DNA of 64,000 bases, from assembly GCA_965112735.1 (NCBI GenBank), contig OZ218958.1:186001-250000 (forward strand). Reading direction: 5' to 3'. Below are positions 21,599-61,537 of this stretch, piece by piece (position 1 is the first letter of the stretch; each line of letters opens with the position of its first letter). This stretch comes from Phaeosaccion multiseriatum. Taxonomy: Eukaryota > Protista > Ochrophyta, other classes. The notes beneath the pieces were generated by a model. It was given only the letters and a program-made list of their open reading frames with translations. It did not search any database and was not told the DNA's origin. The translations under genes were made by a program, and so were the position numbers.

Positions 21599-22101
21599 GG
21601 CAATCTTATCCCCTGACAATCCCGGCGCCGGTGGCCGCCAGTGTGTTGTGGCCTTCTAGTAGCAGCACCTTCCTGTCCCTGACAAAAAACCCAACGACCG
21701 TGCTTCTTCTTTGTCGAAGTACGTATCTTTGCGCATCTTCATCCAGGCCGCCACTAAACGCTACCGGCACTGCGTCTATCACGTCTATGCGTCTAGCACT
21801 GTGTCTCCTCCTCTTCCTCCCACCTCCTCAAGCTGATCCCTTTGCTTGACGTTACAGGCGTAGGTCACTACTGACCGGACTTCCAAAAAAATCACCTCTC
21901 TCCTCTCACGTTCGAACACCGTTCGTTTCATTCAGAATGTGGTCGTTCATGCCATCTGTGAGCTGCCTCTCTCCCCTTCTCCTCCTCGCTCTCCTTCCTT
22001 TTTACACATTACAACTGTATATATTTTTTTCTCTCCTCCTTCGCTTCCTCCCTCTCCTCCCTCGTGCTCGTTTCTCTCTTCTTCTGAGTGGCGACGGGAG
22101 A

Positions 22102-23346: not shown

Positions 23347-24685
23347 TTGGTGGAATGAATCATTCATGACCAGTATCACTGCCACGAGGAGTAAAAAGTC
23401 AAAGAGAGGGACTTCCCCATCGCTCATGGCTCTCTGATCTGTCCCTACGCAACTCTGCTGTACTGATTTTACAAAGTGACCAATCCAAATTTAAGCGGGC
23501 TGCACTCGTCGTTCTCTTAAGGTGCTTGTATGAGAGTGAGACAACGGTCCTGAGAGGTGTGAAACCCATCCACAGGATGTTTAACTTCTCAGTATCCCTG
23601 GGGTGGAGGCAATTGAGCCTATACGCCTACAGCATGCTATTGTGGTACCTCTAAATCTATCCACAGGCTTGCAGGGGCAACAAAGGACATTATAGTTGTT
23701 CCAGAGGGTCGCTCGCAGCCGAACAGGGGTCCTTTCAGTCGTCTGTAGCTACTGGGTTTCATTTCCCCTGTGACCTCCTCTTCAGCTGCTGTCTTCAGAG
23801 CGAACGCAATCTCCAACCACTCCATTTCCACCCACCATGGGCTGGCACGGTAGCTGGGCCTGGCCTTCTTTTGGTGCGTCTTACCTCCTTCTTGCTCTTT
23901 CTTTCCTGTCACAAGTATGATGGTTGGATGATGATGGTTTCGTCGCCGCTCCCGTACCTTTAGCTCCCGCGCTTTAATTCAGAGCAGTCACTTACAACCC
24001 GTATCTTTTTTTTCTTCTTCACTTATTGCTTCACGAAAAAAGTTCAATTTTGGGGCGTTGGGGCGTTGGTGGTCGGAGTATTATTCACAGAATCCGTCCA
24101 CGCTTACTCCATCGTGCTGCTATCGACGCATTCTCGATAGCATGCTGTCGGGCCCGGGCATCCGGGCATGCTATCGGCCGCCGGCGATAGCAGATAGCAG
24201 ATAGCGCGTCAGGCAGGGGTCGAGTTTAGCTACCCACGTTGTTGGTGGATCTATAGCGTGTGGCACACTTCCTTCCCCTGGAGACGCACATGGAGTTGCT
24301 GTCGGAGAGTCAGAGTCCCTGAAACAAGAAGGCAAGGACGGTGTCGCTCAGCTCTCTCCTGCTGCAGGTGCTTGACCATGCGGATATCCTGTGCGGAAGG
24401 GACTTTCAAAGATTCGAAGTTCAATTTCTGGGGCGTTGGTGGTCCGAGTATTGTTCACAGAAGCCGTCCACGCTTACACATGTTCACATGATGGATCTTT
24501 AGCGTGTGGCACACTTCCTGCCCCTTTGGGGGTATGAAGTTGCCATCAGAGGGTCAAAGAAACTTGATCCTTGTCAGAGTCCCTGAAACACAAAGGGAAG
24601 ATCTGTGGCTCAGCGCCCTCTCCTGCTGCTAGTCCGGAAGGGACTTGTTACGGCTTCATCGTTTCGCGCCAATTGATTTGAATCA

Positions 24686-27600: not shown

Positions 27601-27931
27601 TATGACGGCCCCCAGCAACGGCTCGGGTCTGCGCCATGACGAGGAGACCAAGATGGCGCGTCAAGACGAGGAGACCAAGGCCATGGGGCCTGACGACGAC
27701 AAGTTCAAGCAGCACGAGCCCTTCGCCAAGTCTACCGCCCCCGTGCAGCCAGGCCGCCCCGACGTTTGGGAGCTCTTGCGGGCCGAGAAGCGCCTAGCGG
27801 AGGGGGAGGGTCGGCTACGCGTGCGCGTGTTGGCCAGCGGGCCCGACGCCATGGTGAAGGAGTGCGTGCGTGCAGCGAGGGACATTGACTGGAGGCTCTT
27901 TGCCGTGGAGGAGTTCTCCTTCGAGTTTTAG
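24686..27931 (+). CDS. Ferric reductase (FRO family) copy 1, with a 1-nt frameshift in a G run (pseudogene or sequencing error)
   Basis: Exons 24686-24915, 25160-25381, 25529-25874, 26009-26280, 26426-27931; G4 at 25541-25544 versus G5 in copy 2. Confidence 0.8.
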
Positions 27932-28207
27932 GCGGGAGGGACGGAGGGGGGGGGGGGGAGGGAGCCGACCAAGGGCCGAGCGACGCCGGGTTTGCCAAGT
28001 CAACTCAGGTGTAGTTTTAGGGTTATTAGCTAAGAACAACGAAACTATTAGGTGCTGGTCACCGTCCTCCACTACCGCCCATCTCCCCTCCCCTCCGAGT
28101 ATTGTGCGGTGTGTCGCTCTTTCCTGTATTTCTCTCCGTACCCGGTCTTCCCTCCGCTCCAAGAAAGCGGCCCTCGTACTGATCGGAACCCGCGTCCTTT
28201 CTCTCCC

Positions 28208-29551: not shown

Positions 29552-29849
29552 GGCTGTGCTAAGCTAAGATAGTAGAAACGTTAAGGGGTTTGGACTAAGT
29601 ATATGCTGCGCCTATGGTGGGGCGTCAGTGTCCGTATTGATAATATATCTCTACTACTTGCTGATGCAAAGCTTGTGCCCACAAAGAGGAGGGTGAAACG
29701 CTAGAGCCGTTGAACCCCCTCGGGGCGTGCCTAGGAAACCGACATTCTTATTATACCCCAGAATGTGTGACCGGAAACCCTCAGGCAGGACAATCTACCA
29801 CACTACCCCCAAGCGATAGTTCGAGCCAACTGGGAAGTAAGTGTGTTTA

Positions 29850-32800
29850 TCATCTAGTTTGTGTCCGCTTTCGTGTGCGCGCGGAGCGCAGCGGCTTAGT
29901 AGCCGATCGCGTCGTAGTCTTGCGCAGATAGGCTCGGACTGCGCTGATCAACTGCTTGTCCTGATGGTGCTGCAGGTAGGTCTCCAGTAAACGTGGAGTA
30001 TCTTCGTGCAGCGCCTCGATGGGCTCCTCGCTATTCTCGAGGGCGTCAAAGCCACGCCACTTAACAATGACGTGCCATGAATCATCTGCGTGCTTAACGA
30101 GGCCTTCAAAGGCCTCCACCACAAAGTCTTGGGTGTTATACGAAATCTGTTGAAGTACGTCGGTGGTGACGTTAACGTGAGCACCGCAGTAGTAGCGGAG
30201 CCGGCTGATGTGTACCTCATAGGTACGCTTCTTGCCCACAAGCTCCTCCACCTTGTACACGTGTTGCTCAAGGGCTTCAAGCACTCGGCAGGGCCCATGC
30301 CACTTGCCTAGTATCTTGCTTGTAGGCCCTACTGTTGCAACGAGTACGTAGACTCCGACCTGAAACAGCGTCTCGCTGTTGAGCTGCTTAGCTCTGGCCA
30401 AGTCCTGACGATGCTCTGCACCACGTCTGCCACTCATCAACCTCTGGTTGATGCCATCGCGCTTGTGATCGCGGAGGGCAGTCAGTTGGCGCGCCGCCTC
30501 GGCACGCTGCCCCTCCTTCCTCCGATGGAGTTGTGTCGCAAGGGTGTCTCTCTGCGCCGGGATCAGCTGCAGTAACCGAACCTTTTGCAGTCGATCCGCG
30601 TCGTGGATCAAAATCGTGTCGAGAGGCCGCTGTGGCACGTGACCACTGTGCAGCTGGATGGGAGATAGGTTAGACCGACTGCTCTTGTTGGAGCTGTTCT
30701 CAACAGCCTCCATCACTGGCAGTAGCTGCGGCCATGTCTCGGGCGGCTGCCGTAGCTCAGACATCATTGATCTCATGATCTTCTGCAGTGTCTGTACACC
30801 ACGCTCGCCCAATCCTCGACTGTATGGGTTGTGTGCCACCACAAAGTGGTGGTTGCACCGCAAGAGCTGACTTAACTCACGTATCACCTCATTTAGGAAA
30901 TGACTGCCTCGGTCACTCTGCCACCTGGGCACTACGCCATGCTGTGCGAACCAGCGCAACAGACCGCGTGCACACACTCGTGCAGTAGCTTCCAAACATG
31001 GCTCATACATTGACAATGATGAAAAATCATCAAAGATGCACAGCACTTGCTTGACCTGAAGCTTCATGAACCCTTCTGGGGACTCTGCCCATATGACTCC
31101 ATCGCCAATCTTGACGAAGTCAAACCAGATGAGTTGCTGGGGTCCAGTGGCGTGCCATTGAGCTAGCAGGGGGCGAGGCACTCTCTCGCCCTTGCCGTTG
31201 GTGAGGCAGTGGAGACAGTTCTGAACGAGGCTTCGCACGTCCTTGTCTAGCGAGTGCCAAATGAACTTCTCCTTAATAGCACTCAAGGTGTTTGTCTCTC
31301 CCTGATGGCCCATCATACCCTGATGGCCAGTCACACACAGCCTCAGGTGCATGTCTTCCGCCTTGGCTCCCACCGAGGGAATCCAAATGCGGGTGCTGTC
31401 AGCGGGGTTGCTCGTCGGATGGCACGCTCGAATCAACCCGTCGTCGCCAACTGATGAGAGGAGCAGGCGGCGCCCGTTCTCTCCCACCTCCTTGCTAGCC
31501 TGCTGGAGCTCCTGAAGAGCGTCGGCCTGCAGACTGGCAATCTCAGTGGTGGAGGGCCAAGTGAAGTCGTCACACATAGTGTCAAACACTTGCATGGGTC
31601 CAAACTTGCCCAAGGCGAGCACACTAGGGGTGAGGCTCACCGGGTGCGTGTACCGCCTGCTAATGGGGTCGGCCCAATCATGGAGATGACCAGGGAAGTG
31701 GACAATGACATAGTCAAAGCTCTGAAGGCGCACGGCCTGACGCTGCAGCCTGTCCCTCATAGGCTTAGTCATGCCAGGGTACTTGCTGTCGTTGCTCATC
31801 ATGAACGCCAAGTTGCGATGGTCGCAAAAGATGTGCACTTTCTGTGCCCCGACCAAAGCGTACTCGTTCTGGATCAAGCCTCGGAGTGTCGCGTCTCCTT
31901 CCTTGTCGATGGTGGCACGCCTCAGCTCTGCGCCTTCAAAGGCGCCTGAGCCGAAGGCCACCGGGATGTGGTTCATCTCATGTACCGGAAGGCACAGCTC
32001 TTTGGGGTCTATGTATGTAATCATACATCCCCAGTAGAGGTCACTAGCATCTGGGAATACCAGTGCCAGTTTGGTTGGGTCTGGGTGCGACAGCACCGTG
32101 TTCTGTGCAAGAACGCGCTTGATCTGGAAGAAAGCGTCGTCGTGCTCTGTGTCCCACCCCACAGAAGCCAATGGAATCGTCTTGGCCACTGCCTTGGAGC
32201 GCTTGTGCTGATGAGGCTTAGCGTTAGCCTGCCCGAGGGCTTTGTTCAACAGCGCGTTCAAAGGACCCACTAGCTTAGCGAAGTCCTTGATGTATCGATG
32301 AAACCACTGCAGGCTGCAGAGGAAAGTCATCAAATCTCCAGCCGTCTCTGGGGCCGCGAGACTGGTCAGGCCCTGCACTCTGGCGGGGTCATGTCGTGTG
32401 CCGCGTCGGTCGTGCACGCGGCCTAGGAACTTAAGCTCTTTGCCGAAGCGGAAGGAGCTCAATCCTATCTTGATGTTGGCGCTGTGGAGGCGCTTCATCG
32501 TCAGTCGAGTGAGACTCACCATCTCCTCTCCCACCTTTGCCCAGTACGCTACGTTGTCAATGTAGACGGCGTGGGTCTTGCACAACTCTTTGCGAAAGAG
32601 GTGGGTCATCTGGCCTTGGACGTAAGCGCCCGAGTTCTTAGCCCCCTGGGGTACTCGAGTTGGCGTCACTTTGCCATTTGGGAATATATAGGTGTGAGCA
32701 ACTTGGCTCAACTTGCCTAGTGGGAATTGCTAATACATGTCAACCCCATCTATCTCGATGAACCATAGGCAACCCAACATGGAGGCTACGGCGTCTTCAA

Positions 32801-33200
32801 TGTTCATCATCCCAAAATCGACCTTCTGTACCTTTTCATTGACTTCGCGAAAGTCGCAGACGATACGGTACTTGCCTGGCTTGCCGGGTTTGCCCACTGC
32901 AAACGCCGGGCTGCCATGAGCGCTCTGCGGGTTGCTATAACCCAGGCCTTTGTCTATCAACTTGTTGCAAAAGTCATTTACAAAAGCACCCTTTGCGCCT
33001 TGTTGCCTTATGGGGAGACGGGAGCTCGGTACCTTATTGGTAAACGTCACCTCCATTGGCTCTACGTTAGCGGGGCCGTCGCTAAAGAGCAACTCTTCCC
33101 GCCACACGTCGAACTCTAAGAGAGCTTCCATCATTGGCTCTCTCAGCTCCGCAGGGAAATCATGATCAGTGATTGCTTTGTCCACAATGGGACCTAGCAC
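29850..33200 (-). pseudogene. pol: Retrotransposon Pol (RT, RNase H, integrase, chromodomain), interrupted
   Basis: RT motifs YRIVCDFREVN, Y*QFPL (in-frame TAG 32730-32732), PQGAKNS, YIDN; RNase H FPDASD / FCDHRNL / WADPISR; integrase HHCC, SDRGSHF, GLGER, WHGPC; chromodomain VIVKWRGFDALENSEEP. Confidence 0.9.
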
Positions 33201-35035
33201 CTCTCTACGGCGTGCCTCAGAAGGGGGAACTCCTCTGATGGCCCTTGAATAGTATCCGGTACACCTTCACACTCTTCACGGTCTTTATTATTAAGCGGTT
33301 GGCCGCCAATGGCGCTAACCTCTGGTGCCTCTGCACTGGCGACAGGAGGGGGGCTCTCGGCCGCAACCTCCTGCGCTCCTACCCCCAATACTTGCACGGG
33401 GAAGTTGCTTGCCTCAAAATCGGCATAGTCTTGTATGGTCTCAACGCCCATAGAACACACGCTCTTCTCAACACTATGCTGCTTAGTCGGGGCAGCCCCT
33501 GTCGCAGGGGAAGCGTCGTCACGCTCCCTCTGCAGGGTCTCCTCCGACCGTTTCTCGTGCACTCTGTGCAACTGCTCAGTCAAAGACTCCAAGCCCAGTG
33601 CCTTATGCAAAGGCCGGCCCAGAATCAGTCTGCTGCCCAAGCTCTCAAGAACCAATATGGATCTGAACTCCTTGTCCAGCTGCGCTGTACTCACGCTTCC
33701 ATGACTCAGCTCTATCTCAAGGTGACTGCCGCACAACACTTCGTTGGCAGTCACAGGTCCAGCAGCAGTGACGCACTCCGAAGGCTCACAGGCCTCTAGT
33801 ACACCACCACCCTTTCCGACCCACGTGCGAGCCAGGTCACCACCCATGACCATACCCACATCGCATCCGCTGTCAAACAGGGCTTGCGCCGACATCCGCA
33901 CCTCCGGAGTCGTGTCATTCACGAGAACCACGCTCATGCGGTCTCCCGTGAGGTCCATAGCAACTGGCCCTGGCAAAGAAACACCTGCCGCAGCCGAAGA
34001 AGATGAGACGGACGTCACCCCCGGTTTCTTCGCCTCAGCCTTCCTCTGCTCCCATGCCTTCTGTTTCTCTGCCTTGATGCGTTTCTTGTCTTCGGCAGTG
34101 GTTGTAGGGCAGTCGTCAATCCGATGCGGCTTGTCGCAGGCCCAGCACTTCGGAGTACGGGCCTTCTTCAATGGGTTGCTGGCTGTCTCTTTGCCCGCTG
34201 CTGTCTCCTTCGAGGAGGTCTCTGCACCCGTACGCTTTGGCTGCTGCTCCTGCTGCCACTTGCGCTTGCCGCCTGCACCTTTGCCTTGCCCACCACCGCC
34301 CCCCCCGCCGCCTCCAGATGCTCCTTGGTCACCCTTGAGTCCGGGAAGGAAATGTTCGGCCTTACCGCCGATACGCCGTGCTGCCGCTCTCATGGTGGCC
34401 CACTGGCACAAGTGTTTGACGAATTTCTCCATCCACTCCCCGTGATGCTCTCCCCAGTCCTTCTGTCCATCTTTGAACGCGTCCACCAGCATCTTCTCCA
34501 TGCATGGGTCATAATTCTTGACGATGGTGAGTAAGCCTCGCTGCATCCCTTTGGCAGCGTGCTTTCCGTTCGGACCAAGGTAATTCGTATCGGTGGGGTT
34601 CAAGTTCAGGTACTCCTTCCTTGCTGCCGACTCGTGAATCGCGCGAAGGTATTGCTGGCACATATACTGGAGATTGTGCTTGAACTGAAGAGGGTCTGGG
34701 TCGTACTCGATTACCGTCCTCCTGATGATCTCATTAAGAGTGGCGTTGCCGTTGACGTCCTCCCTGCGATTCTTCTTCAACCACCTCTCCAAGTAATCCC
34801 GTACCATCTTGGACGTTAGCTGAGCCTCCGACACTTTATTGGCGATGGCTATTCCAAAACGATGTGCTGGTTCGATGAGCTGCACCATGCTGGGGATATC
34901 CAGCGGCTTGTCCCTATCCCTGAGCGCGGACTGATCGTACTGCAGTAAGAACTCGCTGACGACTTCCGCAGATAGAGGCGTCCGTATCTCCGGATAATGG
35001 GTTGGGTCCCTCATGATGATGCCTTGAACCGCCAT
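33194..35035 (-). CDS. gag: Retrotransposon Gag-protease
   Basis: CCHC knuckle CWACDKPHRIDDC; aspartic protease motif ALFDSGCD and ILGRP. Confidence 0.9.
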   Translation of the reverse strand: MAVQGIIMRDPTHYPEIRTPLSAEVVSEFLLQYDQSALRDRDKPLDIPSMVQLIEPAHRFGIAIANKVSEAQLTSKMVRDYLERWLKKNRREDVNGNATLNEIIRRTVIEYDPDPLQFKHNLQYMCQQYLRAIHESAARKEYLNLNPTDTNYLGPNGKHAAKGMQRGLLTIVKNYDPCMEKMLVDAFKDGQKDWGEHHGEWMEKFVKHLCQWATMRAAARRIGGKAEHFLPGLKGDQGASGGGGGGGGGQGKGAGGKRKWQQEQQPKRTGAETSSKETAAGKETASNPLKKARTPKCWACDKPHRIDDCPTTTAEDKKRIKAEKQKAWEQRKAEAKKPGVTSVSSSSAAAGVSLPGPVAMDLTGDRMSVVLVNDTTPEVRMSAQALFDSGCDVGMVMGGDLARTWVGKGGGVLEACEPSECVTAAGPVTANEVLCGSHLEIELSHGSVSTAQLDKEFRSILVLESLGSRLILGRPLHKALGLESLTEQLHRVHEKRSEETLQRERDDASPATGAAPTKQHSVEKSVCSMGVETIQDYADFEASNFPVQVLGVGAQEVAAESPPPVASAEAPEVSAIGGQPLNNKDREECEGVPDTIQGPSEEFPLLRHAVERC

Positions 35036-36001
35036 GATGTCGCTCCTCCAATCGGTCCGAGAAAATCCTTCTCCAAAGCCTTTCTAAAGCGAGAACTAGT
35101 TCTGTGCTAAGCTAAGATAGTAGAAACGTTAAGGGGTTTGGACTAAGTATATGCTGCGCCTATGGTGGGGCGTCAGTGTCCGTATTGATAATATATCTCT
35201 ACTACTTGCTGATGCAAAGCTTGTGCCCACAAAGAGGAGGGTGAAACGCTAGAGCCGTTGAACCCCCTCGGGGCGTGCCTAGGAAACCGACATTCTTATT
35301 ATACCCCAGAATGTGTGACCGGAAACCCTCAGGCAGGACAATCTACCACAAGGCCTAGGCCTAGAACCGCCGGCCTAGGGAGAAAATATGGCCGGCCTAG
35401 AGCGGGCGTAGGCCGCTCGGCCTAGGGCCTAGAGCATAGGCTTCTAGGCCAGTCTGGAGCCGAAGCTGTGGAAGTCTAAGAAACAGGTCAAGGGCCGATC
35501 TTATCTCCTGAAGATCCCGGCGGCGGTGGCCGCCAGTGTGTTGTGGCCTTCTAGTAGCAGCATCTTCCTGTCCCTGACAAAAAACCAACGGCCGTGCTTC
35601 TTCTTTTTCAAAGTACGTCTCTTTGCGCATCTTCATCCAGGCCGCCACTAAACGCTACCAGCACTGGCTGCGTCTATCACGTCTATGCGTCTAGCACTGC
35701 GTCTCCTCCTCATCCTCCCAGCTCCTCAAGCTGATCCCTTTCCTTGACGTTACAGGCGTAGGTCTACCGGACTTCCAAAAAAATCACCACGGCCCTCTCA
35801 CCTCACATTGAGAGTACACATTATCACATTGAAGACCGTTCGTTTCGTTCAGAATGTGGTCGTTCACGCCATCTGTGATCTCACCTTCAGCACAATCACA
35901 CTTTCAGTTTCTTAGGTGATTCCTAGTAAGTCAATAAATCATCGCACGGGGCTCTCCTTCTTGTTCTTGCCTCCCTCGTGCTCATTTCTCTCTTCTTCTG
36001 A

Positions 36002-37351
<1,350 letters not shown>

Positions 37352-38692
37352 TTGGTGGAATGAATCATTCATGACCAGTATCACTGCCACGAGGAGTAAA
37401 AAGTCAAAGAGAGGGACTTCCCCATCGCTCATGGCTCTCTGATCTGTCCCTACGCAACTCTGCTGTACTGATTTTACAAAGTGACCAATCCAAATTTAAG
37501 CGGGCTGCACTCGTCGTTCTCTTAAGGTGCTTGTATGAGAGTGAGACAACGGTCCTGAGAGGTGTGAAACCCATCCACAGGATGTTTAACTTCTCAGTAT
37601 CCCTGGGGTGGAGGCAATTGAGCCTATACGCCTACAGCATGCTATTGTGGTACCTCTAAATCTATCCACAGGCTTGCAGGGGCAACAAAGGACATTATAG
37701 TTGTTCCAGAGGGTCGCTCGCAGCCGAACAGGGGTCCTTTCAGTCGTCTGTAGCTACTGGGCTTCATTTCCCCTGTGACCTCCTCTTCAGCTGCTGTCTT
37801 CAGAGCGAACGCAATCTCCAACCACTCCATTTCCACCCACCATGGGCTGGCACGGTAGCTGGGCCTGGCCTTCTTTTGGTGCGTCTTACCTCCTTCTTGC
37901 TCTTTCTTTCCTGTCACAAGTATGATGGTTGGATGATGATGGTTTCGTCGCCGCTCCCGTACCTTTAGCTCCCGCGCTTTAATTCAGAGCAGTCACTTAC
38001 AACCCGTATCTTTTTTTTTTCTTCTTCACTTATTGCTTCACGAAAAAAGTTCAATTTTGGGGCGTTGGGGCGTTGGTGGTCGGAGTATTATTCACAGAAT
38101 CCGTCCACGCTTACTCCATCGTGCTGCTATCGACGCATTCTCGATAGCATGCTGTCGGGCCCGGGCATCCGGGCATGCTATCGGCCGCCGGCGATAGCAG
38201 ATAGCAGATAGCGCGTCAGGCAGGGGTCGAGTTTAGCTACCCACGTTGTTGGTGGATCTATAGCGTGTGGCACACTTCCTTCCCCTGGAGACGCACATGG
38301 AGTTGCTGTCGGAGAGTCAGAGTCCCTGAAACAAGAAGGCAAGGACGGTGTCGCTCAGCTCTCTCCTGCTGCAGGTGCTTGACCATGCGGATATCCTGTG
38401 CGGAAGGGACTTTCAAAGATTCGAAGTTCAATTTCTGGGGCGTTGGTGGTCCGAGTATTGTTCACAGAAGCCGTCCACGCTTACACATGTTCACATGATG
38501 GATCTTTAGCGTGTGGCACACTTCCTGCCCCTTTGGGGGTATGAAGTTGCCATCAGAGGGTCAAAGAAACTTGATCCTTGTCAGAGTCCCTGAAACACAA
38601 AGGGAAGATCTGTGGCTCAGCGCCCTCTCCTGCTGCTAGTCCGGAAGGGACTTGTTACGGATTCATCGTTTCGCGCCAATTGATTTGAATCA

Positions 38693-41600
38693 ATGGCCAT
38701 GTCTTATGAGCAGCGGCAGCAGTTCAAGCTTCGGGCCGGGGGGCCAGATGTGATGGGCGGTGCGATGCTCCTCTTCCTTCGCTTCTCCACCATGTGCTCC
38801 CTCGCCGCGGTCTGCTTCTACATTGGGATCTACTCCTCGTCGTGGTACAGGGCCCACATCTACGATCGTGATGAGCAGCAATTCTATCTCAAGGAGGGCA
38901 AGTTCTCCTTGCGCAATGCCCAGTAAGTACAGTCTTCCAGAAAGGGAATATGGAAGGAGGGTAGCGATGATGGTGACAGCCACACCGCCAGCAGCAACAC
39001 GACAACAACTGCTTCCTGCCGCGCTGGTGCTGGTGCTGATGCTGGTGGTGGTGGTGGTGGTGGTGGTGTTCTTTTCCTACTTTCGCTGCGGAAGGGCAAG
39101 CTGCTTGTCCTCTTTTCTGAGCCCCATATGCGGCCCACTTGCTTTGTCCGTGCCCGTGCCGTACAGCAATTTCATCATCCTCTTCACCGCGGTGCCCTTG
39201 ATGGCAGCCACACTGTTCGGCGCTCTCCACGAGGCCCTTTGGATCAACCGCCGCCTTCGAGCCTCAGCATCTTCCTCGTCCGACTCCGTTGCGTCATCAC
39301 CGCAGCTATCCAAGACGGCCTCCCTGGGCCGAACCTGCAGTGCCGTTCTGCACTACAAGTTAGGACCACTTCTTCAACAACGAGCCCCGTAAGTAGTCAC
39401 GCCACTCCCAGTCGCGGCCACCTCTTTCCCCAAAGCACTGGCTAGTGTTCGGTCGGCTCAGTTGCTGTCGGCCCAGCTCACGGCGGCCTTGCTTGTGTTG
39501 TTCTTGTCGTTTATGAACAACACCACAATGAACAGGTGGATCACCGTGGGGGAGGCCCTCGTAGCGCTTAGCTGGTTGGCCGCCAACATTTGCATGCTCG
39601 TCTACGGAACCATTCGCCGGATGGATCGCTTCGAGGCAGGGTCAGGTAGAGGCACAAAGAGCGAGTACCGGCTCCAGGTCGTCGCCTTCCAGTTCGGGGT
39701 CGTCTGCATGGCGAACATGACGGTGGTCCTTATTCCTGTTTCGCGCTCGAGCCGCCTGCTAACCGGTATGGGAGTGAGTTTCGAGCGGGCGGTGCTATAT
39801 CACAAGGTGGTGGGGCATGCGGCCTTGTTGGCCCTGCTGTTGCACGCTGGGCTCTATGTGGTCTACTGGGTCTTGCTCGGAGGTGAGTGAGTGTGAGTGT
39901 GCATCGCCCTATAATTGGAAAGGATCAGGGCGTGAGTGAGCGAGTGCACGAGCAAACGTGCAACAATCTCACTGTTTTGTCTCTTTTGCTCTCTTTCTTT
40001 CTTTCTACTTTGTCAGGCATCAGCCGGGCGTATGAAGAGTCCGTCCACTGGAAGGGCGGCACCAACATCCCGTTCGGATGGATGACCATGGTCTTCGGCC
40101 TGCCTCTTTGGATCACCTCCATCGCCACGGTCCGCAAGCACTACTACTCACTCTTCAAGGCTGTGCACTGGCTCGCCATCCCCGTCCTCGTCTTTTCGTG
40201 CCTGCACGACGACAAGGTGGCCTACTTCCTCCTCGGCCCCATGATCATCTACGCTGCTCACGTGGCCACAAGACTCGCGTCATGGCAGGTACATACGCGC
40301 ACGCCCCACGCTACGCCCCCTGCCTCCCCTTTGCATTCCCCACGCTGCTGCTTCCTTCCCTCACTTAATTAATGCCCCCGCCCCGCCCACCAACCCACTC
40401 CACTCGCTTTCTTTGTCCCGTTGTGGCGGACAGCGCTGGAGGTCGTGGCAGACGTGGCCCTCCGTCCGTGGCGTGCTGCGCCTCTTCACCTCGGCCTCCT
40501 CCGGCAAGACCCAAACAGCAGCAGCCTCAAGCAACAAGAGCAGCGATATCATCCCCAAGCCGCACGTGGTGACGTACCTGGCCGTTCGTGGGGAATACAT
40601 TGTGCTCTCCGTCTCTGTGCCCGAGAGTTTTAGCATGCGGGGAGGTGCCTTCGCTTACCTCTCCTGCCCTGGCACCCTCATCGGCCGGGCCAACGAAGCG
40701 CACGCCTTCTCCGTGGGTATGCGAGGAGTACCCCCACACTACCCCCACGACGGCGCCACGTCCTCCTCCGCCGCCTCCGCTCCTTGCTGCACTTTCTACA
40801 TCAAGAAGCTGGGCGGCTGGACCGACGCTCTGGCCAAACTGTCTGCGGGCGTGGAGCTGAGCGGCGACCCTTCCTCCCTCCTTGTCGACATGGATGGGCC
40901 CTACAACCAGAGCGGCGTCGCCTTCACCTCGCACGCGGCCCTTGGAGCCGAGCGAGTGGTGCTCGTTGCTGGGGGCAGCGGCCTCGCGTCCTTCCTGTGC
41001 TTCCTCCAAGACTGGAGCCTTGCCGCAGCCGCGGCGGGTGACGAAGGGAGGCTTCTTCCGGAGGTGCATCTCGTGTGGACCACGCGATCGATGCAGGAGA
41101 TGGAGCTCCTGGGCGCTGCACTGCCCACCTTCCTCGCGCAAGCTGGGGAGCTGGGCTCGCGCAAGCTGAGCCTGACGCTGCATTGCACTGCCAAGAACCT
41201 CGCAAAGGAGGAGCAGACACTGATGCGAGCAGAGGCGGGCGGAAGTTCCTCGCTGCTCGTGGAGTGGCCGGCCGCCGCTACCGGTGCTACCGGCCGCAGC
41301 CCTGTGGCTCAAGCCTCGTACGTGCCCGCCCTCCTGGACGTGATGCGAACGGCATTCGCTCTGAGCGGCGGCTACGTGGGTGTAATGTTCGCCAACTACG
41401 AAGAGGAGAACCGTGGTGGGCTGCGAGGCTACCACCGAGGGGGGCTCATGGTGGCGCTGACTGCATCGTGGGCAATCGCCTTCCTCGTGTTTTGGGAGCT
41501 GGTGTGGACGCTGATTCTTCGGCCCTGCTTCTGCCCCAGGCGCCAGACTTCGGCGGCAGCCCGCTCTTCCGGCGCCAGCGTTGCTGACGCCGATGATGCT

Positions 41601-41939
41601 GCGGTGAGTATGACGGCCCCCAGCAACGGCTCGGGTCTGCGCCATGACGAGGAGACCAAGATGGCGCGTCAAGACGAGGAGACCAAGGCCATGGGGCCTG
41701 ACGACGACAAGTTCAAGCAGCACGAGCCCTTCGCCAAGTCTACCGCCCCCGTGCAGCCAGGCCGCCCCGACGTTTGGGAGCTCTTGCGGGCCGAGAAGCG
41801 CCTAGCGGAGGGGGAGGGTCGGCTACGCGTGCGCGTGTTGGCCAGCGGGCCCGACGCCATGGTAAAGGAGTGCGTGCGTGCAGCGAGGGACATTGACTGG
41901 AGGCTCTTTGCCGTGGAGGAGTTCTCCTTCGAGTTTTAA
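38693..41939 (+). CDS. Ferric reductase / ferric reduction oxidase (FRO family), intact copy, 5 exons
   Basis: Exons 38693-38922, 39167-39388, 39536-39882, 40017-40288, 40434-41939; heme-binding TM motifs PVSRSS...FERAVLYHKVVGH...LH and RKHYYSLFKAVHW...LH; FAD motifs HAFS and DGPY; NADPH motifs LVAGGSG, HLVWTTR, SGP, EEFSF. Confidence 0.92.
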
Positions 41940-42446
41940 GCTGGAGGGACGGAGGGGGGGAGTGTAGGTGTATGGGCAGGACATCGACATTAGGTATCGA
42001 GAGGGTCGACTTTGGGTTTAATTCGGGACTGTGGGCGGGAGGTTATCGGGTCAGTGACAAGGCCGTGTAGTAGGCAAAGGGGATAAGGACAAAGGACATA
42101 CAGGACATTGGGACAAGGGGAAGGACAGGACATGATTTACGTGATTTTTTTTAGACGAAATTAAGGCGTTTAAAGAGACAAACAGGGCTTTAAAGGGGGT
42201 CAAAAAGGGGAACGTCGTAAATGCAATCGTCATTTGGCGTCAAAAAAAATTCACGCGGGGCGAGTGCCACTCGACCGCGCGAAATCACAGGAGAATCCAA
42301 AAGAAAACCCGTAAGTGACATCTATAGAAAAAGACTGTGAAGGATCCGATGTGGTGCTTCGCGCCATCTGTGAGCTGCCTATCTCGTCCGCTTCCTCCTC
42401 CTTCCTCCTCCTTCCTCTGGGCTTCCTGAGCGTGACGACGGGAGAG

Positions 42447-45400
42447 ATGGGGGCGAAAACGGGGGGCACAGTATTGGCAGCCTCTGGAGGGATGCTTCTG
42501 CTGCTTCTCATCGCAGTCTGCCATGTTGCAACTACGGTGGGCTTTATGCCGTCCTCCACCCCGGCAGTGCTCCTCTCTCAGACGAAGGTCTCGCCAAGCA
42601 ATAACAAGGCCATCATTCAGCGCGCAACAGGCGTTCCCTCTAGGCCCTCCCCTCCACCGACGTTCGCCCGCTCCCGGTCATCCCGAGCGAGCATGAACAT
42701 GTCCACCAAGCTGACTGCCCAACCGCCCAAGCTCATCATCTCGGGCGCCCCTGCCAGTGGGAAAGGCACCCAGTGCGAGTTAATCACGCAGCAGTACGGC
42801 TGCGTGCACCTAAGCACGGGAGACATGCTGCGGGAGGCCGTGAAGGACGGGACTGCACTGGGCACGTCTGCAAAGGGCTTCATGGACAGTGGACAGCTGG
42901 TGCCGGACGAGGTCATCACAGGAGTGGTGACGGATCGACTTGCTATGCAGGACTGCCAGGAGAAGGGCTGGCTGCTGGACGGCTTCCCCAGGACCAAGGT
43001 TAGTCCGTCAGTTGGCCAGTCAGTCGTTCAGTGAGAGGAAAGAGAGGGGGGAAGGGGGATGAGGAGAATACTTCATCGAGCTTAGCCTATCTTTCCCTCA
43101 ATACATTCCCTCCTAACCCCCCCTCCTTCACACACACATGCGCTAGGCCCAGGCCGAGGCTCTGGCGCAGGCTGGAGCGTTGCCCGATGCCTTCATCCTG
43201 CTCAACGTGCCCGAGAAGGACCTAGTGGAGCGCGTGGTGGGCCGCCGCACCGACCCGGAGACCGGCAAGATCTACCACACCAAATTCTTCCCCGCGGAGG
43301 ACAAGGACGTGGAGGCGCGTCTCGTGCAACGCTCGGACGACACGGAGGAGAAGGTCAAGGTGAGCGAGGTATCGGGCTCGAGTGTACAATGCTTGCCAGA
43401 TGCCCTGTGTGTCTGTGTACCTGCATTTTTGGCTGCCCGCCCGACCAATAATTCGTCGCTCCTCCTCCTCTGCTCCACCCCTCTCGTCCTCCTCACTTCC
43501 TCTTCACCTCTCCGTCTCCTCTCCATGACCTCGCTTGTCAACGCCCCTCCTGTGCCCAACCGCTCTTCATGACCTCGCTTGTTTACGCCCCTCCTCTGCC
43601 CACACTCTGCCCACCCCTCCTCCTCTCCAGGTGCGGCTGGTGGCGTTTCAGAAGCACAGAGACGAGGTGCTGCAGTGCTACGACGAGGGTCTCCGCGTCG
43701 AGGTGGACGGCACCAAGAGCAAGGATGAGGTGTTCCAAACCATCACCACCGCCCTCGGCCCGAAGGGAGGGGCTGCCACTACCACCAGTACCACCAGCAC
43801 TTCCCCTGCCCCCGGCCCTGGTGTGGTGAAGACAGCAGCCTCGTTGGCTGCCATCGTATTCGCCGACACCGCCGCCAAAAGACTGTTCCTGAGGCTTGGA
43901 TGGTCCTTTCCGGCGTCCCTGGGGGGCATGCTCGCCCTGTTCGCTCTGCTGCTCGTCCTCTCCTCGGCCAAGTCCACCGCCGGAGCTGCCGAGGGCCTGG
44001 CCTCTTCTCTACAGCCCGGCTCGGCCTTCCTCTCCCGCTGGCTGCCCGTGTTCTTTGTGCCCAGCCTGATCACCCTCCCTCTCAGCCCTGCCCTAAGCGG
44101 GGCGGATGCTGCTCGGCTCGGCGCGGTGGTGGTGGGGGGTTACCTCTTCAGCCTGCTCAGCACCGCCAAGCTGGTGACTCTGCTGAGTGGCGGGGGCAAA
44201 GCTCCAGCAGTTGGTGATACAGCAGCAACAGCAGCAGCAACAGCCCCTGCCTCTGCCTCTTCCTCCCCTCCCCCCCGCGCCTTCTCCAAGACACTGCAAG
44301 GCTCCTTCTTCACCGCTGCAGTGGGCACGGGCTCAGCCGCTGCCGTCATTGCTCGAAGGGCTGCTGAGCCTTCCCTTACTGTGCTGTCCATGCTGCGATC
44401 GGCATGCATGCTCAGCACCACGCTTCTCACTTACACCGTGGGAGTCACCTCCGTGCCCAAGAAGGTGGGGGGGGGGAGGGAGGCAGAGAGGGAGGGAGGG
44501 AAAGAGAGGGGCCGAAGGGGAGACGGAGGGAAGGGTAGATGGGTTGGTCTCGCAGTGAGCTTGTGCCTGTGACTCATGTACTCGTGTACGTACAGCCTCT
44601 CCCCTCTCTGTCCGGCCACGCGCGTCTTATCCCACCCACCCCCTGCCCCTGTATGACTGAATTGCCTCACTACCTATCTGTCCTACTGCACAACCACCTC
44701 ACAGTCTCACTGCCTCACTGCCCCACTGCCCCATCGTACTGCATAGGTCAAGGCCCTGGTGCACCCTTTGGTGACATGCACCGCCCTGACCCTCTCCGCC
44801 GCGCACCTGCTAGCCCGGGCCTCGGGGGTCGCCTCCTCCCTCACCTTCACCTCCGTCCTACAGGTGCTGTACCTGTTGTAACTGTTGTAACTGCAATACT
44901 CATAGTCTCCTCAGAGCCGCACCTTGTAACCCTGTAACCGTCATCTGTAACCGTCATGAGCGCCTCCCCTCCCCTCATCTCCCAACACGTGGCAACACAA
45001 ACAGGGCTATGTGACGCAATCAAAGTGTCCCGTGCACCTCGGGGCCGGAAACATCCTCTTGGGCCTCCTCGGGCCCTCCATCCTCTCCTTCGCCCTCCAA
45101 ATGTACCAGCGTAGGCAGCTGCTCAGAGAGAACCTCGGCAAGGTGCTCGGCGCCACCCTCTACGCCGCTGCGAGTGGGCTCTTTGGAACGGCCGCCCTGG
45201 CGAGGGGTTTGTCACTCAGTCCGTCTCTCCGCTTGTCGGCTCTCTCTCGTCAGATCACCTCACCTCTTGCGCTGGCCATCGCAGGCATGCTGGGGGCGCA
45301 GGCCTCAATGGCGGTGGCTATTGTTGTGGTCACGGGGGTGCTTGGGGCCAACTTCGGTGCCACTCTCCTCTCCAAGGCGGGGTGAGTGAGTGAGTGAGTG

Positions 45401-45557
45401 AGTGAGTGATTGAGTGAGTGCGTGAGTGGGTGGATGAGTGAGTTAGTGAGGCAGTGTAGTGTAGAGCCACAAGGGGGGGGGGGGGTGCTTTGCTTTCTAT
45501 TCTTTACCCAGAGACCGGAGGGAAGAAGGAAACCGTCTCTCTGTCTGTCCGTCTATG

Positions 45558-45598
<41 letters not shown>

Positions 45599-46211
45599 CT
45601 CTCGTTCTCTCTCTCTCTGTGTGTGCCATGAGGAGCGCATCGTGCCGTACGCTTGTTTTGTTGACTTGTTGTATTGATGACTTCAAAGAGTCGAGCGAAC
45701 GGACAAGAAAAGAGTACCAGAGTCGAGGGGCGAAGAGAAAAGAGAAGAGAAGCGACAGAGGACCAGTCGTTGGAGGGAGGGAGGGAGGGACACGAGATTG
45801 ATGCGAAGGGCTCGGACTGATGTCGCCCGCCGCCTCTACTCTGCAACTCCCTCTCCCGTTCTCACAGCCGCCCTTCCCGCGCGTATGGCTCCACTCGCGT
45901 TTCTCCCCACCCGCCTGCCCCCTCCGCCCCCCTCCTCCCTCCCTCTCTCTTCTCTCCTTCCATCTGTACATCTATCCATCTATCTATCTGTCTATGCTTT
46001 CTCTCTCTCTAGTGTGGAAGACCCCGTGGCCCGTGGTCTGGCGCAGGGGGCGAGTGCGCACGGACTGGGCACAGCGGCCATGGTGAATGAGCCGTCCGCC
46101 TTCGCCTTCGCAGCCCTTTCCATGGCCCTCACCGCCACCTTCAGCACCCTGCTCGTGTCAGTAGGGCCCGTCAAGAAACTGCTACTCAAACTGGCCGTGG
46201 GGGCGCCATGA
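42447..46211 (+). CDS. Plastid adenylate kinase fused to a PLGG1-like (LrgA-LrgB) glycolate/glycerate transporter, 6 exons
   Basis: Exons 42447-42998, 43147-43359, 43631-44464, 44747-44863, 45005-45381, 46013-46211. The AK C-terminus runs into the transporter inside exon 3 with no stop. PLGG1-type motifs [68 protein letters not shown]. Confidence 0.9.
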
Positions 46212-50916: not shown

Positions 50917-53900
50917 TCAGGATGGCCCGGGGTACGACCCCCGGGGCAGCAGCAGCAAGTAGCACGTCAGCGCCACGGCCATGCTCGCGGCCGCTGTAGG
51001 CGCTAGTCTGCGCCCTGCACCCCCCTCGGGATCTCCGTTTGCCCCTCGGGGAGTGATTTCCGCGTTGTCATCTTCATCTCCCGCTACCGACTCGTCCGTC
51101 GTCGTCGTCGTCGCCTCTGAGGGTGCTGGTGAAGGACCAGCCCCTCCTTCTCCTCCTTCTTCCTCTTCTTCTTCCTCTTCTGGTCCTTCTTCTCTGGGAG
51201 TGCTTGTCGGTGAAGGCGGCACCGGGCTGGGGGGCAAGGTGTCTCCTGCGCTCAAAGCCGAGCAGCAGGTGGCGTTTTAGGCGGCGATACAGCAGCAGCA
51301 GCAGTTGGTGATACAGTAGTCGGAGTTAGGGGAGATGTCGAAGCTCTTCAGTTGCTGAGGGAAGACAAAGAAACGCACGCGCCTTTCTCAGACAGAAAGA
51401 CACACCCACACACACAGCGAGAGAGAAAGACACACACCACACACACACATCCACACACATCCACACACATGCACTAACCCGCCGCCGTCGTCGGAGGATC
51501 TGGCCGAGGATTGAACGGCGCGTACACACTGGGGCAGAACTGATCCATCGTCACAAGGGGGAGGCGCGCCCCGTCTTCACATTCGCCCGAGGCCGTAAAG
51601 GCACAGCCGTCCCCGGAACAGTCGTCGTTGAGGTTCGACCGGCTGCAACATTCGCAGTCATATCGGCACAGCTCGACGGGCTGCTCGGAGAGGGAGCATG
51701 CCGAGCCAGGCAGCCAGGCGGAAGAGGAGCACGGGCATGTGGAAGGGTTCGACGGGTCCGCCACTGGGAAGGCGAGAGGGACGGGGGGGGGGGGGGAAGA
51801 GGTGGGGGAGGGAGGGAGGGAGGGAGGGAGGGAGGGAGGGAGGGAGGGAGGGAGGGAGGGAGGGAGGGAGGGAGGGAGGGAGGGAGGGAGGGAGGGAGGG
51901 AGGGAGGGAGGGAGGGAGGGAGGGAAGGAGGGACGGAGGGAGGAAATGAGACGGAGGGAGGAAATGAGAGGGCGGGAGAAGGAGTGGGAGTGGCGGAGGC
52001 CCGCCCAGAAGTGGAAGGGAGCAAAGACATGCCTGAATACAAGGTGGTGATGAGTGAGGACATGCCTGAATGCGGGGTGGTGATGAGTGAGGAGGGGGGC
52101 AGGGCAGTTACGCATGCTTTCTTTCGCTCTAATCTCTCTCCCTCACTGTCACACGTCCCCCCCAGGGGTCTCTCCCTCCCCGCGTCTCACTTTGTCCATC
52201 CTCCGCGCAGGACTGGAATACGGACAGCCGACAGCCTCTGTTGTAGTGCCTCCACCACGCCTCCCCCTCCGGGTTCGGGGTGTAAGTCTCGGTCTGACAA
52301 CCGTTCGAGCCCACCACCTTTGGACACAAGAGAGAGAGGGGGGGAGGGAGACGGAAGAGAGGAGGAGCAATGAGTGAGTGTGGCAGTCAGTTGACCCTCG
52401 GCTTGAGGAAATAAGTGCATTGTTCTCAGAGCAGTGCACGCCTCTATCCACAACAAGCGAGGCGCACCTGCCCTACTTCTTCCCTCCCTCCTCCTCCTCC
52501 TCCTCCTCCTCCTCCTCCTCCTCCTTCTCCTCCTCCTCCTCCTCCTCCTCCTCCTCCTCCTCCTCCTCCTCCTCCTCACCTCCTCCTCGCACTCCGTATC
52601 ACGGGCCTCATCGGCTTTGCAAGCCTGCGATACAACGCGCTGGAAGATGGCGTGATTGACAATGTGCGGAGAGTGCCCGAGGATGTCCGCAGGCCGGTTG
52701 GGCGATGAGAGACCCGCGGTGCCTTCCAGGTTGAGGTACAGCACTTCGTTCTCCGCCGCCAGCTGTGAAAGTCGACATTGGAGCCATTGTGATGGGGGTG
52801 GGTGGGTGGGTGCGTGCATGGGCCAGTGAGTGGGTACGTGGGGGGGTATGGGTTGCTGCTGAGTCGGTCCAGGAGCGGTCCTTTGTACGCTTTGATGTTG
52901 ACTATGGAGGCCGCACACACACACATACATACACATACATACATACGCATACAAACAAATATAACATACACACAAACACACCCATGCACACACACATGCA
53001 CGCACACCCACACCCACCTAGCCACACACACACACACACACACACAGATGCACACCCACGCACACACACACACAGATGCACACCCACGCACACACACCTC
53101 CTGTATGATATCGTCCATGCGATTGAGGAAGTCCCCCCTCCTCCTCACCCCCACCATGACGGGCACGGCGTTGGGCATGTCCTCGACGAGCCGCTCGAGC
53201 ATAGCGGAGTACTTGTCTCGGAAGTAAGAGAGTGCTGCTGTCCTTCCCTCCTCTCCCCGCCCGCGGAAGGCTCGCACCTCGGCGCTCTCGGGGGAGGGGA
53301 ATGTGTTGCAGGCGTTGTCCTTGCCGGTGATACATAGATCGTACCTAAGGTGTGCGTGGGAGGGAGGACATTGTGAGTGTCAGGACGGGCGTGTGGCACA
53401 GCGTGTCAGTGTGTGAGTCAGTCAGTCTGTCAGTCAGGAGGGCAGCACGACAACTCCTCTTTCCGCGCTTTCCGTGGCAGCCCACGCCGAAGCCGAAAGG
53501 AGACGGGACACAATGACAGAGAAAAGAGTTTGCACCCTCCCACACACACACACCTATGTGTGTGCACACATGCACGTACCAGTAGCCGACATAGATGACC
53601 ACGTAGGCTCTGTCGTCAAGTCTACCCGCCGCCTGCAGCAGGTCCAGTTGTTGGTGCATCATGCCCGGAGACACAGTTGCCACGGTCACCAGGCTCACGA
53701 CCCCTGCCTGCCGCTCAGCTTGGCTGCGAGACAAGACGCCCTCACAGGCGGGGGTAAGGTACTCGCTGGCCTCTCTGTCCACAACCCCCGACTCGGAGTC
53801 GCTTAGCACGAGCTTCAGGCAGTCGTCCATGGGGTCTCTCTTGCCGCGGGGCCGCCCCTCGAAGGCCCACTGCTCGTAGTCAAGGTCCATGTCGTAGCGG

Positions 53901-59700: not shown

Positions 59701-61537
59701 GGGAGAGAGGAGTGGCGTGGCGTGTTCGTCAGGCGTGCAAGTCAGTCAGTCAGTCAGTCAGTCAGTCGGTCAGTCAGTCACTCAGTCAGTCGCGCTGTGA
59801 TGCATCGCACCTCCTCACGTCTGCACCCCCCCCCTCCCCCTTGAACACACGCCAACTCACCAACTCATGCACTCGCCAGGTGGTTGGATCTCCCGGCTGC
59901 CAAAGCGAGACTTACAGCGACAACCCGGACACCCGAGAGTGGTGGGACCAATACGACCGTGGCTGCATCTACGAGGCTTTTACATCCCCTCTCACTGGCG
60001 ACACACCCCCACCCACCCCCACGGGGACGAGTCCCCCTACGTCGAGCCCCCCCACGCTCCCCCCCACGCCGGAGATCAACGACCCGACGTGTCCCTTTGG
60101 GGCGCCCAATGTCTTCGTCAACCCCGGGGTGGAAGGCAGCCTCGCCTCGTGGGAGTTCTTTGCGGCTGGTTCTGTGGGCTCTATTACTTACGTGAGCGAA
60201 GGTGATGGTGGGGCGCGCTTTACCATCAACACACCCGGGAGTTCGGACTGGCAGATGCAAATTTATCAAGTGCTTCCCATTTCGGAGCTGACGCTGGGCG
60301 AAACCTTCACTGTGAGTTTCGACATCACCGCCGACGCCAACCGGCAGATCACCACCTTCATTCAGCAGTACGAGGCCCCGTACTCGCCCTTTGTGAGTGC
60401 TCCTTGTATCGTTGGCCCCACGGTGTCCACATGCACCGTCAGCGCGACGTTACGACCCTCGCGTCCCCCGTCAAGTTCGGGGTTCAAGGCGCCTTGTCCA
60501 ACGTCGACTTTACGATGCTTGGGGGTTTGTTGTGCCGGGCTGATGGAGCCCCCACTACTCCGGCACCTGTACCTGCCACTGAAGCACCTGTACCGCCAAC
60601 TGTGGCCCCAACCGTAGCACCAACACCACCTCCAACTGAAGCGCCGGTAGCGGAGACGGAACCGCCAACTGTGGCCCCAACAGTAGCACCAACACCACCT
60701 CCAACTGAAGCCCCGGTAGCGGAGACGGAACCGCCAACTGTGGCCCCAACCGTAGCACCAACACCACCTCCAACTGAAGCGCCGGTAGCGGAGACGGAAC
60801 CGCCAACTGTGGCCCCAACCGTAGCACCAACACCACCTCCAACTGAAGCGCCGGTAGCGGAGACTACTCCCTCTCCTGTCCCTGCAGGGAGGACGTGCAG
60901 CGACGGCAGCACGGGGGTCCTCGTCAACACGTACTTCGACGAGGGGCTCTCTGGGTGGACCGGGTACGTGAGGTCTGGCAGCACTCTGGTGGCCTCGTTT
61001 GTCGCCGCAGACGGCGCGGTGACGTTCGACATCGAAGCTAGGGGAAACAGAAGAGACGACATGCGGGTGAGTAATGACAACGGGGCTTTGTTCCGTTTCG
61101 GCGTGATGCAGAGTGTCACTCTCCCTTCCTTCGGGGTTTGGCGCCACCATCCTGCCTTCCTGTCTGCCCTGCGTGCCCATCTTACCACCCCCTTCTGCTG
61201 GCTCTCACACAACCCCGGCGTTCCTCCGCCCCCCGTCATCCTTCCCCAGCTGTACCAAGCGGTGCCGAGGGCGGACCTGGAGCTGGGGTCCACCTATACC
61301 CTCTCGTTCACCCTCCGTGCCGTGTCCGAAAGGGACGTCCAATTGTTGGTTGGACTCCAAGACAGCCCAAGATCATACTACGCCCGCCAGAGGGTCACCA
61401 TCAACTCCCAGGAGGCCGTTTACACGCTAAGTACGGAGGTGTTCGACGCGGGTGCGGCCATTCTGTTTGGCGTCGAGGGGGGGCGGGATGATGTCAACTT
61501 TACCGTGGAAGACGCCCTGCTGTGCCCGGGAACCTGA
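56793..61537 (+). CDS. Secreted SGNH/PC-esterase-like protein, paralog B, with two CBM4_9-like carbohydrate-binding modules; 1-nt frameshift at ~60444
   Basis: Same exon series as paralog A (PEPNIRGGCTPRC; CHFHYYTQTEVVQC; IVMGSSLL; VIYIGLW; ELDGHP...NHAMFQR; GCQSETY...WWDQYDRGC); modules NPGVEGSLASW...WQMQIYQ...LGETFTVSF and NTYFDEGLSGW...LYQ...LGSTYTLSF. Confidence 0.75.
60593..60866 (+). repeat. Coding tandem repeat, 69 bp x4 (PPTVAPTVAPTPPPTEAPVAETE linker)
   Basis: Four near-identical units between the two CBM-like modules. Confidence 0.95.

Follow-up and report, generated by a model that had tools for sequence, protein, structure and literature searches.

An adenylate kinase joined to a PLGG1-type LrgA-LrgB transporter in a predicted plastid protein of Phaeosaccion multiseriatum and other algae

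Does the alga Phaeosaccion multiseriatum encode a plastid adenylate kinase (AK) and a membrane transporter of the PLGG1 type in a single polypeptide, or have two neighbouring genes been joined by an error of assembly or annotation? The question is raised by a gene located on a stretch of 64,000 nucleotides (NCBI GenBank assembly GCA_965112735.1, contig OZ218958.1, positions 186,001 to 250,000 of the forward strand), which was analysed over its whole length, is called the window below, and has a GC content of 58%, spliceosomal introns and genes that are algal and not human. The spliced open reading frame (ORF) of this gene comprises 2292 nucleotides and encodes 763 amino acids, its sole stop codon is the terminal one, and the domain order of the product is a predicted bipartite plastid presequence, a long-LID AK, a linker, LrgA and LrgB. 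We consider it likely that this is a nuclear gene of a photosynthetic stramenopile-type alga, whose product is one plastid-targeted chain made of a competent chloroplast-type AK with a long LID, a linker and a PLGG1-type envelope transporter. The ADK-LrgAB architecture is real, conserved and already present in public databases, where it is uncharacterised, and the window gene is one more member.

The gene model comprises six exons, all of them with a GT donor and an AG acceptor (Table 1). The junction between AK and LrgA is located within exon 3, inside an unbroken ORF (43535-44572), and the linker between the two domains consists of approximately 25 low-complexity residues of the T/S/P type; a further low-complexity loop, between LrgA and LrgB, is encoded by the same exon. 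Pfam profile searches were performed exon by exon. ADK (PF00406) matched exon 1 with an E-value of 1.6e-33, and the short piece encoded by exon 2 gave weak matches to ADK_lid and ADK. LrgA (PF03788) was detected at residues 89-181 of exon 3 with 33.1 bits, against a gathering cut-off of 28 (E 5.6e-8), and LrgB (PF04172) was detected in exon 5 (82.4 bits, profile positions 47-156) and exon 6 (37.3 bits, profile positions 161-210). Positions 1-46 of the LrgB profile are covered through collinearity with the proteins P0232 and P0163, whose own LrgB match extends over positions 1-209, and the NCBIfam matches (adenylate kinase and the CidB/LrgB family) concur. Moreover, residues 73-761 are collinear with the Nannochloropsis oceanica protein P0163 (49.8% identity over 693 columns), and this collinearity validates the short exon 4 as well as the phase-2 junction of exons 5 and 6. 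The initial annotation, which was made from the DNA letters and had proposed this exon model, the position of the junction within one exon, and ADK and LrgB profile matches as a check, was thus borne out in these points, and the ochrophyte host that it presumed is correct as well.

For both AK exons the closest solved structure is the maize chloroplast AK 1ZAK (E 1.8e-30 for exon 1 and 1e-21 for exon 2). The P-loop of the window protein, GAPASGKGT, is identical to that of 1ZAK, and the motifs TGDxLR, LLDGFPR, the GRR of the LID, RxDD and the C-terminal R are all present, so the intact P-loop and LID described beforehand, like the T/S/P linker, are indeed there. When the window protein is aligned with 36 fused homologues, these catalytic motifs are kept in 70-100% of the sequences, and in a second alignment of the fused family the AK Arg and Asp columns are invariant. 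Because the catalytic motifs are conserved across the fused family, the AK domain of the fusion is probably catalytically active. In keeping with this, a comparison with the neighbouring stand-alone AK gene of the window (copy B in Table 1) gave 11 synonymous and 10 non-synonymous differences over 215 codons (pN/pS of approximately 0.29).

LrgA and LrgB are contained in one polypeptide, as in PLGG1-type translocators, and the LrgAB part of the window protein is 35-45% identical to unfused eukaryotic relatives. Among these, the red-algal protein P0010, which bears the UniRef name 'Plastidal glycolate/glycerate translocator 1', is 38.7% identical to the window LrgAB part (E 9e-84); the best identities found were 54% for the LrgAB protein of the brown alga Choristocarpus and 50% for the Nannochloropsis fusion. 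In the LrgAB tree (106 rows) the window protein is placed among eukaryotic LrgA-LrgB proteins, one of which is the red-algal protein named PLGG1 in UniRef; in this tree no sequence was recognised by name as coming from a land plant, and word-based homologue searches did not find a named land-plant PLGG1. Arabidopsis PLGG1 (AtLrgB, At1g32080) is a plastid glycolate/glycerate translocator (Pick et al. 2013, as cited in PMC9546453 and PMC4368765). The membrane part of the window protein is accordingly predicted to be a small-carboxylate transporter of the PLGG1 type, with glycolate and glycerate assigned as substrates by homology. Of the photorespiratory glycolate/glycerate transporter named in the initial annotation, the transporter family is therefore upheld by the LrgAB similarity, and the substrate stands as a name given by homology only.

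The N-terminus of the fusion protein has a hydrophobic core resembling that of a signal peptide (aa 3-38), followed by a Phe at the predicted cleavage site (..HVATTVG|FMPSS) and a stretch rich in S, T, P and R, that is, in hydroxylated and basic residues. A signal peptide followed by Phe and a transit part constitutes the bipartite signal for the four-membrane plastids of ochrophytes. Judged by eye against the ochrophyte ASAFAP-type rule, the presequence appears to be of this bipartite type, unlike a plant-type transit peptide, and a plastid location is predicted, which specifies the more general "plastid-type presequence" suggested earlier. The same arrangement of signal peptide and Phe can also be observed in the PLGG1-like protein of Choristocarpus and in other family members.

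In order to find proteins with the same junction, exon 3, which spans it, was searched against 1.84 billion representative proteins, and this search was complemented by a wider search and by cluster look-ups. Continuous alignments leading from the AK C-terminus into LrgA (exon 3 query residues 2-271) were obtained with other proteins; P0002, P0012, P0107 and P0146 align across the junction, and Pfam analysis of examples gave the order ADK-LrgA-LrgB, some with two ADK domains. In total, 48 distinct proteins containing AK together with LrgAB were retrieved. They derive from eustigmatophytes (Nannochloropsis, Microchloropsis), chrysophytes and synurophytes, Chromera velia and metagenomes. The named members include the N. 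oceanica protein P0163 (997 aa, two ADK domains), TFJ81903.1 / A0A4D9CWJ8 of Microchloropsis salina, A0A0G4HF20 of C. velia, and proteins of Ochromonas spp., Mallomonas, Dinobryon spp. and Epipyxis, some of them known from transcriptomes; the only name that the databases give to the named fused members is 'adenylate kinase'. The window protein is collinear with the fusions over nearly its whole mature length, at approximately 50% identity to those of eustigmatophytes and 40-42% to those of chrysophytes. The MMETSP transcriptome ORFs P0165, P0173 and P0420 represent single fused mRNAs in relatives, and L001, a Nannochloropsis-like metagenomic contig, contains AK2-LrgA-LrgB in one intronless ORF of 1926 nucleotides. 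An artefact of splicing or annotation is excluded as the source of the fusion, because the window protein is collinear with fused relatives that include transcripts and an intronless ORF. The spacer between the 'VDG' of AK and the 'FPSS' of LrgA has a length of approximately 61-102 residues in most family members and of 68 in the window protein, and it is poorly conserved and of low complexity.

No description of an AK-LrgAB fusion was found in full-text searches, in reviews of algal plastid transporters or in an ochrophyte plastid-proteome paper that lists chimeric proteins, subscription journals being outside the scope of the search. The suggestion that no protein of this architecture had been characterised is in agreement with this result. 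The novelty that had been attached to the gene holds for the literature searched, in which no account of the fusion was found, but not for the genome, since the 48 fused proteins are present in the databases as adenylate kinases.

Table 1. Coordinates of the fusion gene, its adenylate kinase paralogues and other features of the window.
Feature	Position	Strand	Description
Fusion gene	42447-46211	+	Six exons
Exon 1	42447-42998	+	Presequence (~aa 1-90) and N-terminal AK half with P-loop, TGDMLR and LLDGFPR
Exon 2	43147-43359	+	AK core and long LID, including RSDD; near-identical in both AK paralogues
Exon 3	43631-44464	+	AK C-terminal helix (to ~43762), T/S/P linker (~43763-43835), LrgA, start of LrgB
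Exon 4	44747-44863	+	39 aa, early LrgB helix; collinear with the intronless L001 ORF, P0163 and P0232
Exon 5	45005-45381	+	LrgB core (Pfam LrgB 4e-23; TIGR00659 1.7e-14)
Exon 6	46013-46211	+	LrgB C-terminus (DPVARGL ... AHGLGTAA) and stop codon; LrgB 2.5e-9; intron position common with Choristocarpus
Purine-rich simple repeat	44461-44535		Start of fusion-gene intron 3; resembles 51797-51941
(GAGT)n run	45383-45420		At the exon 5 donor of the fusion gene
(CT)n run	45555-45600		In fusion-gene intron 5
AK copy A	~22103-23346	+	Pseudogene; exon 1 signal peptide and P-loop destroyed
AK copy B	36017-37351	+	Intact stand-alone plastid AK, 271 aa; exons 36017-36478, 36647-36859, 37211-37351
Segmental duplication (~6 kb)	21900-27952; 35970-41960		99-100% identical over long stretches
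508-aa ORF in each duplicated unit	26405-27931; 40413-41939		Ferric-reductase NAD-binding domain PF08030
LTR retrotransposon	29554-35350		Between the duplicated units
Identical direct repeats of the retrotransposon	29554-29802; 35102-35350		249 nt each
Retrotransposon pol ORF	29850-32711	-	RNase H and integrase zinc-binding domains
Tandem array	20086-20666		Period 26-28 nt; ~16 or more overlapping register copies
ORF	60404-61537	+	Weak carbohydrate-binding CBM_4_9 match, E 6.6e-7

The fusion gene is preceded in the window by two further AK copies, which the initial annotation did not mention, and the three copies, with near-identical exons 2 and 3, are located within 22 kb. Copy B has the same presequence type as the fusion and a 98% identical AK domain at the protein level, and it ends with GPGV and a stop codon where the fusion gene continues into the linker. 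Exon 1 of copy A is disrupted by a 1-nt insertion, a 1-nt deletion, deletions of 3 and 18 nt and larger deletions, and its exons 2 and 3 are identical to those of copy B, which suggests gene conversion. At the DNA level, exons 2 and 3 of the fusion gene and the adjoining intron ends are 95-100% identical to the stand-alone copies, the intron interiors cannot be aligned, and exon 1 is 93% and 87% identical to the exons of the other two copies. This mosaic of identity indicates gene conversion among the AK copies, as judged from the sequences, and the high identity consequently does not date the duplication or the fusion. The AK moiety of the fusion would thus evolve in concert with the neighbouring stand-alone AK, by tandem duplication and gene conversion.

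Copies A and B each form part of one unit of a segmental duplication, together with an ORF that encodes a ferric-reductase NAD-binding domain. A long terminal repeat (LTR) retrotransposon is inserted between the two units, and its identical LTRs suggest that the insertion was recent. As for the rest of the window, most other long ORFs gave no Pfam match; the tandem array, the simple repeats of the fusion-gene introns and an ORF with a weak carbohydrate-binding match are listed in Table 1.

Several observations speak against one competent enzyme-transporter chain as proposed above. The similarity to the AK copies ends exactly at position 43762, and a break at this very point would equally be expected of an assembly chimera or of a very recent local fusion. 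Choristocarpus P0006, the LrgAB protein most closely related to that of the window, is not fused to an AK and possesses a signal peptide and FAP motif of its own. No relative of the LrgB core was detected by sequence in the PDB, and a Foldseek comparison of the AlphaFold model of LrgAB with the PDB gave nothing below an E-value of 0.1, with TM values of at most 0.37. Finally, Kyte-Doolittle windows and the AlphaFold helices gave short, discontinuous helices and an ambiguous topology, which affects the sidedness of AK.

The first of these observations concerns the assembly itself. A third stand-alone AK copy could have been misjoined, where the repeat ends, to an internal part of a different gene of the PLGG1 type, and the presence of three AK copies with near-identical exons 2 and 3 within 22 kb, together with a repeat boundary that coincides with the domain border, is what such a chimera would leave. 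The fusion copy is, however, distinct from the others in exon 1 and in the introns, hence it is not a collapsed repeat; AK and LrgAB are joined in frame without a stop codon; the LrgAB part has neither a presequence of its own nor a plausible start codon; and a collinear architecture across the junction is found in dozens of other organisms, including transcriptomes and an intronless ORF. We therefore regard a chimera as highly improbable. A mis-join near 43760 had been named beforehand as the observation that would overturn the fusion, and the AK repeat does end at that point, but the reading frame, the distinctness of the copy and the occurrence of the same architecture in many organisms speak against such a mis-join.

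A more serious alternative is that the fusion is genuine but young and confined to this lineage. A tandem stand-alone AK copy would have been inserted in front of a PLGG1-type gene that had no AK, its stop codon would have been lost, and it would have taken the place of the transporter presequence, independently of the other fusions. At the DNA level, the AK moiety and the neighbouring stand-alone AK, which has the same presequence, show 93-99% identity that also extends over some intron segments, and the similarity stops three codons before the stand-alone stop. In the LrgAB tree the window protein is the sister of Choristocarpus (SH-aLRT 94), whose unfused protein carries a bipartite presequence of its own. 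Unfused proteins likewise occur in Pedinella, Fibrocapsa, Chrysochromulina and Vitrella, and fused and unfused forms interleave, the starred branches of the tree forcing at least four changes. The window and Choristocarpus genes have two intron positions in common (window residues 572/573 and 697/698), and no AK exons were found upstream of the Choristocarpus gene in the 2.2 kb available on its contig.

The same trees contain evidence on the other side. The next clade after the window and Choristocarpus pair consists of the unfused dictyochophyte Pedinella and the fused eustigmatophytes, so that the sister group includes a fused clade. The diverged intron interiors and the near-identical exons 2 and 3 point to gene conversion, and the identity to the neighbouring AK therefore provides no date; moreover, the length of the window linker fits the family. 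In the AK tree the backbone was not resolved, the AK domains cluster by lineage, and the fusion AK and copy B of the window are nearest kin; a single clade of all ochrophyte fusion-associated AK domains, a group chosen after the tree had been seen, was not rejected (p-AU 0.61). Some of the metagenomic rows scored as 'unfused' are truncated fusion genes that start inside the AK C-terminus. Taking both sides together, we consider a young, independent fusion a possibility to be taken seriously but a doubtful one, and we prefer a single old fusion followed by later losses, with which the data are compatible.

Additionally, the fusions of chrysophytes make up a clade of their own in the LrgAB tree, with strong support, and the ADK-ADK-LrgAB fusion of Chromera velia (P0203) pairs with the unfused LrgB-like protein of Vitrella brassicaformis (P0270). 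An ochrophyte origin of chromerid plastids has been proposed (PMC4603697). A fusion that Chromera has in common with eustigmatophytes and chrysophytes might bear on this proposal, although the trees do not resolve it, and could serve as a rare genomic marker for such an origin. In the double-AK proteins (P0163, P0203, P0152-P0157 and L001 4832-7926) the paired AK domains of each lineage are more closely related to one another than to any other AK domain, a pattern that implies either concerted evolution or internal duplication on repeated occasions and that has a parallel in the AK copies located beside the window gene.

If the fusion is one old, functional chain, how would its two parts work together? 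AK is located directly after the transit peptide and ahead of the first membrane helix; during import it would therefore enter the stroma before the helices are halted in the inner envelope, and the basic residues that flank the first helix would fit a stromal side for AK. The enzyme could act as a membrane-anchored equilibrator (2 ADP <-> ATP + AMP) beside the carboxylate transporter, balancing adenylates for the ATP-consuming reaction by which the imported carboxylate is trapped, catalysed by either glycerate kinase or the AMP-making pyruvate phosphate dikinase. Imported glycerate is trapped in the chloroplast by ATP-dependent glycerate kinase. Pyruvate, a substrate of the bacterial LrgAB type, feeds pyruvate phosphate dikinase, an AMP-releasing enzyme that relies on adenylate kinase in C4 chloroplasts.

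The connection between the two domains resembles a flexible tether more than a rigid gate, because the spacer is poorly conserved in the family and the AlphaFold model of Nannochloropsis AK2-LrgAB has a pTM of 0.67, as compared with 0.87 for the LrgAB domain alone. The latter was predicted with a pLDDT of 90.7; in the former, local confidence was good and AK was not confidently docked on the membrane domain. These models bear on another interpretation, according to which AK gates the transporter, serving chiefly as a regulatory sensor of adenylates or having no catalytic activity, or the halves are cleaved in the linker after import and act independently. A conserved fusion does suggest functional linkage, and the low-complexity linker is probably exposed. 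On the other hand, AlphaFold gave no confident placement of AK against the membrane domain, the strong conservation of every AK catalytic motif is more readily reconciled with an active enzyme than with a pure sensor, and the two tandem AK domains of several lineages suggest enzyme dosage and not a single allosteric site. We consider both forms of this interpretation quite unlikely. Likewise, that AK controls or energises the transporter, so that carboxylate exchange at the envelope is set by the local AMP/ADP/ATP ratio, is an idea to which we assign little probability, and the coupling of carboxylate flux to the stromal adenylate state put forward in the initial annotation is speculative. If it were true, the fusion would represent an unrecognised class of nucleotide-coupled plastid metabolite transporters and a Rosetta-stone clue to the regulation of the stand-alone plant PLGG1.

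Regardless of the mechanism, the conservation of an AK fusion across several algal classes, sometimes with two AK domains, argues that adenylate balance and the passage of carboxylates through the plastid envelope are functionally linked. PLGG1 has a key role in photorespiration and is a target in the engineering of crop photosynthesis, and the fusion provides an experimental handle on its energetics and regulation. The link is directly testable in Nannochloropsis, which carries the fusion and is genetically tractable. It is also important to mention that the annotation 'adenylate kinase' hides what is likely the main PLGG1-type transporter of these algae, which affects metabolic reconstructions of ochrophyte plastids.

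The protein can finally be compared with the known systems that it combines. With the maize enzyme 1ZAK it shares the P-loop and a long LID that lacks a zinc-binding Cys cluster; the maize enzyme is soluble and not fused to another domain, whereas the AK C-terminal helix of the window protein continues into the linker and the membrane domain. The LrgA and LrgB modules are homologous to those of bacterial LrgAB/CidAB (the CidB/LrgB family of TIGR00659), which, in contrast, consist of two separate small subunits, have no kinase domain and show weak similarity to the window protein; these bacterial proteins are reported as holin/antiholin-like proteins and as pyruvate transporters. Among the fused algal proteins, those of Nannochloropsis, Chromera and several chrysophytes have two tandem AK domains per chain, whereas the window fusion has one AK and separate AK copies in its neighbourhood. 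With Arabidopsis PLGG1 the window protein shares LrgA and LrgB in one chain and a multi-helix membrane domain, and its predicted plastid targeting would be a further common feature; it differs from PLGG1 by an N-terminal AK of 210 residues with its linker and by the predicted bipartite presequence (signal peptide and Phe) for a four-membrane plastid.

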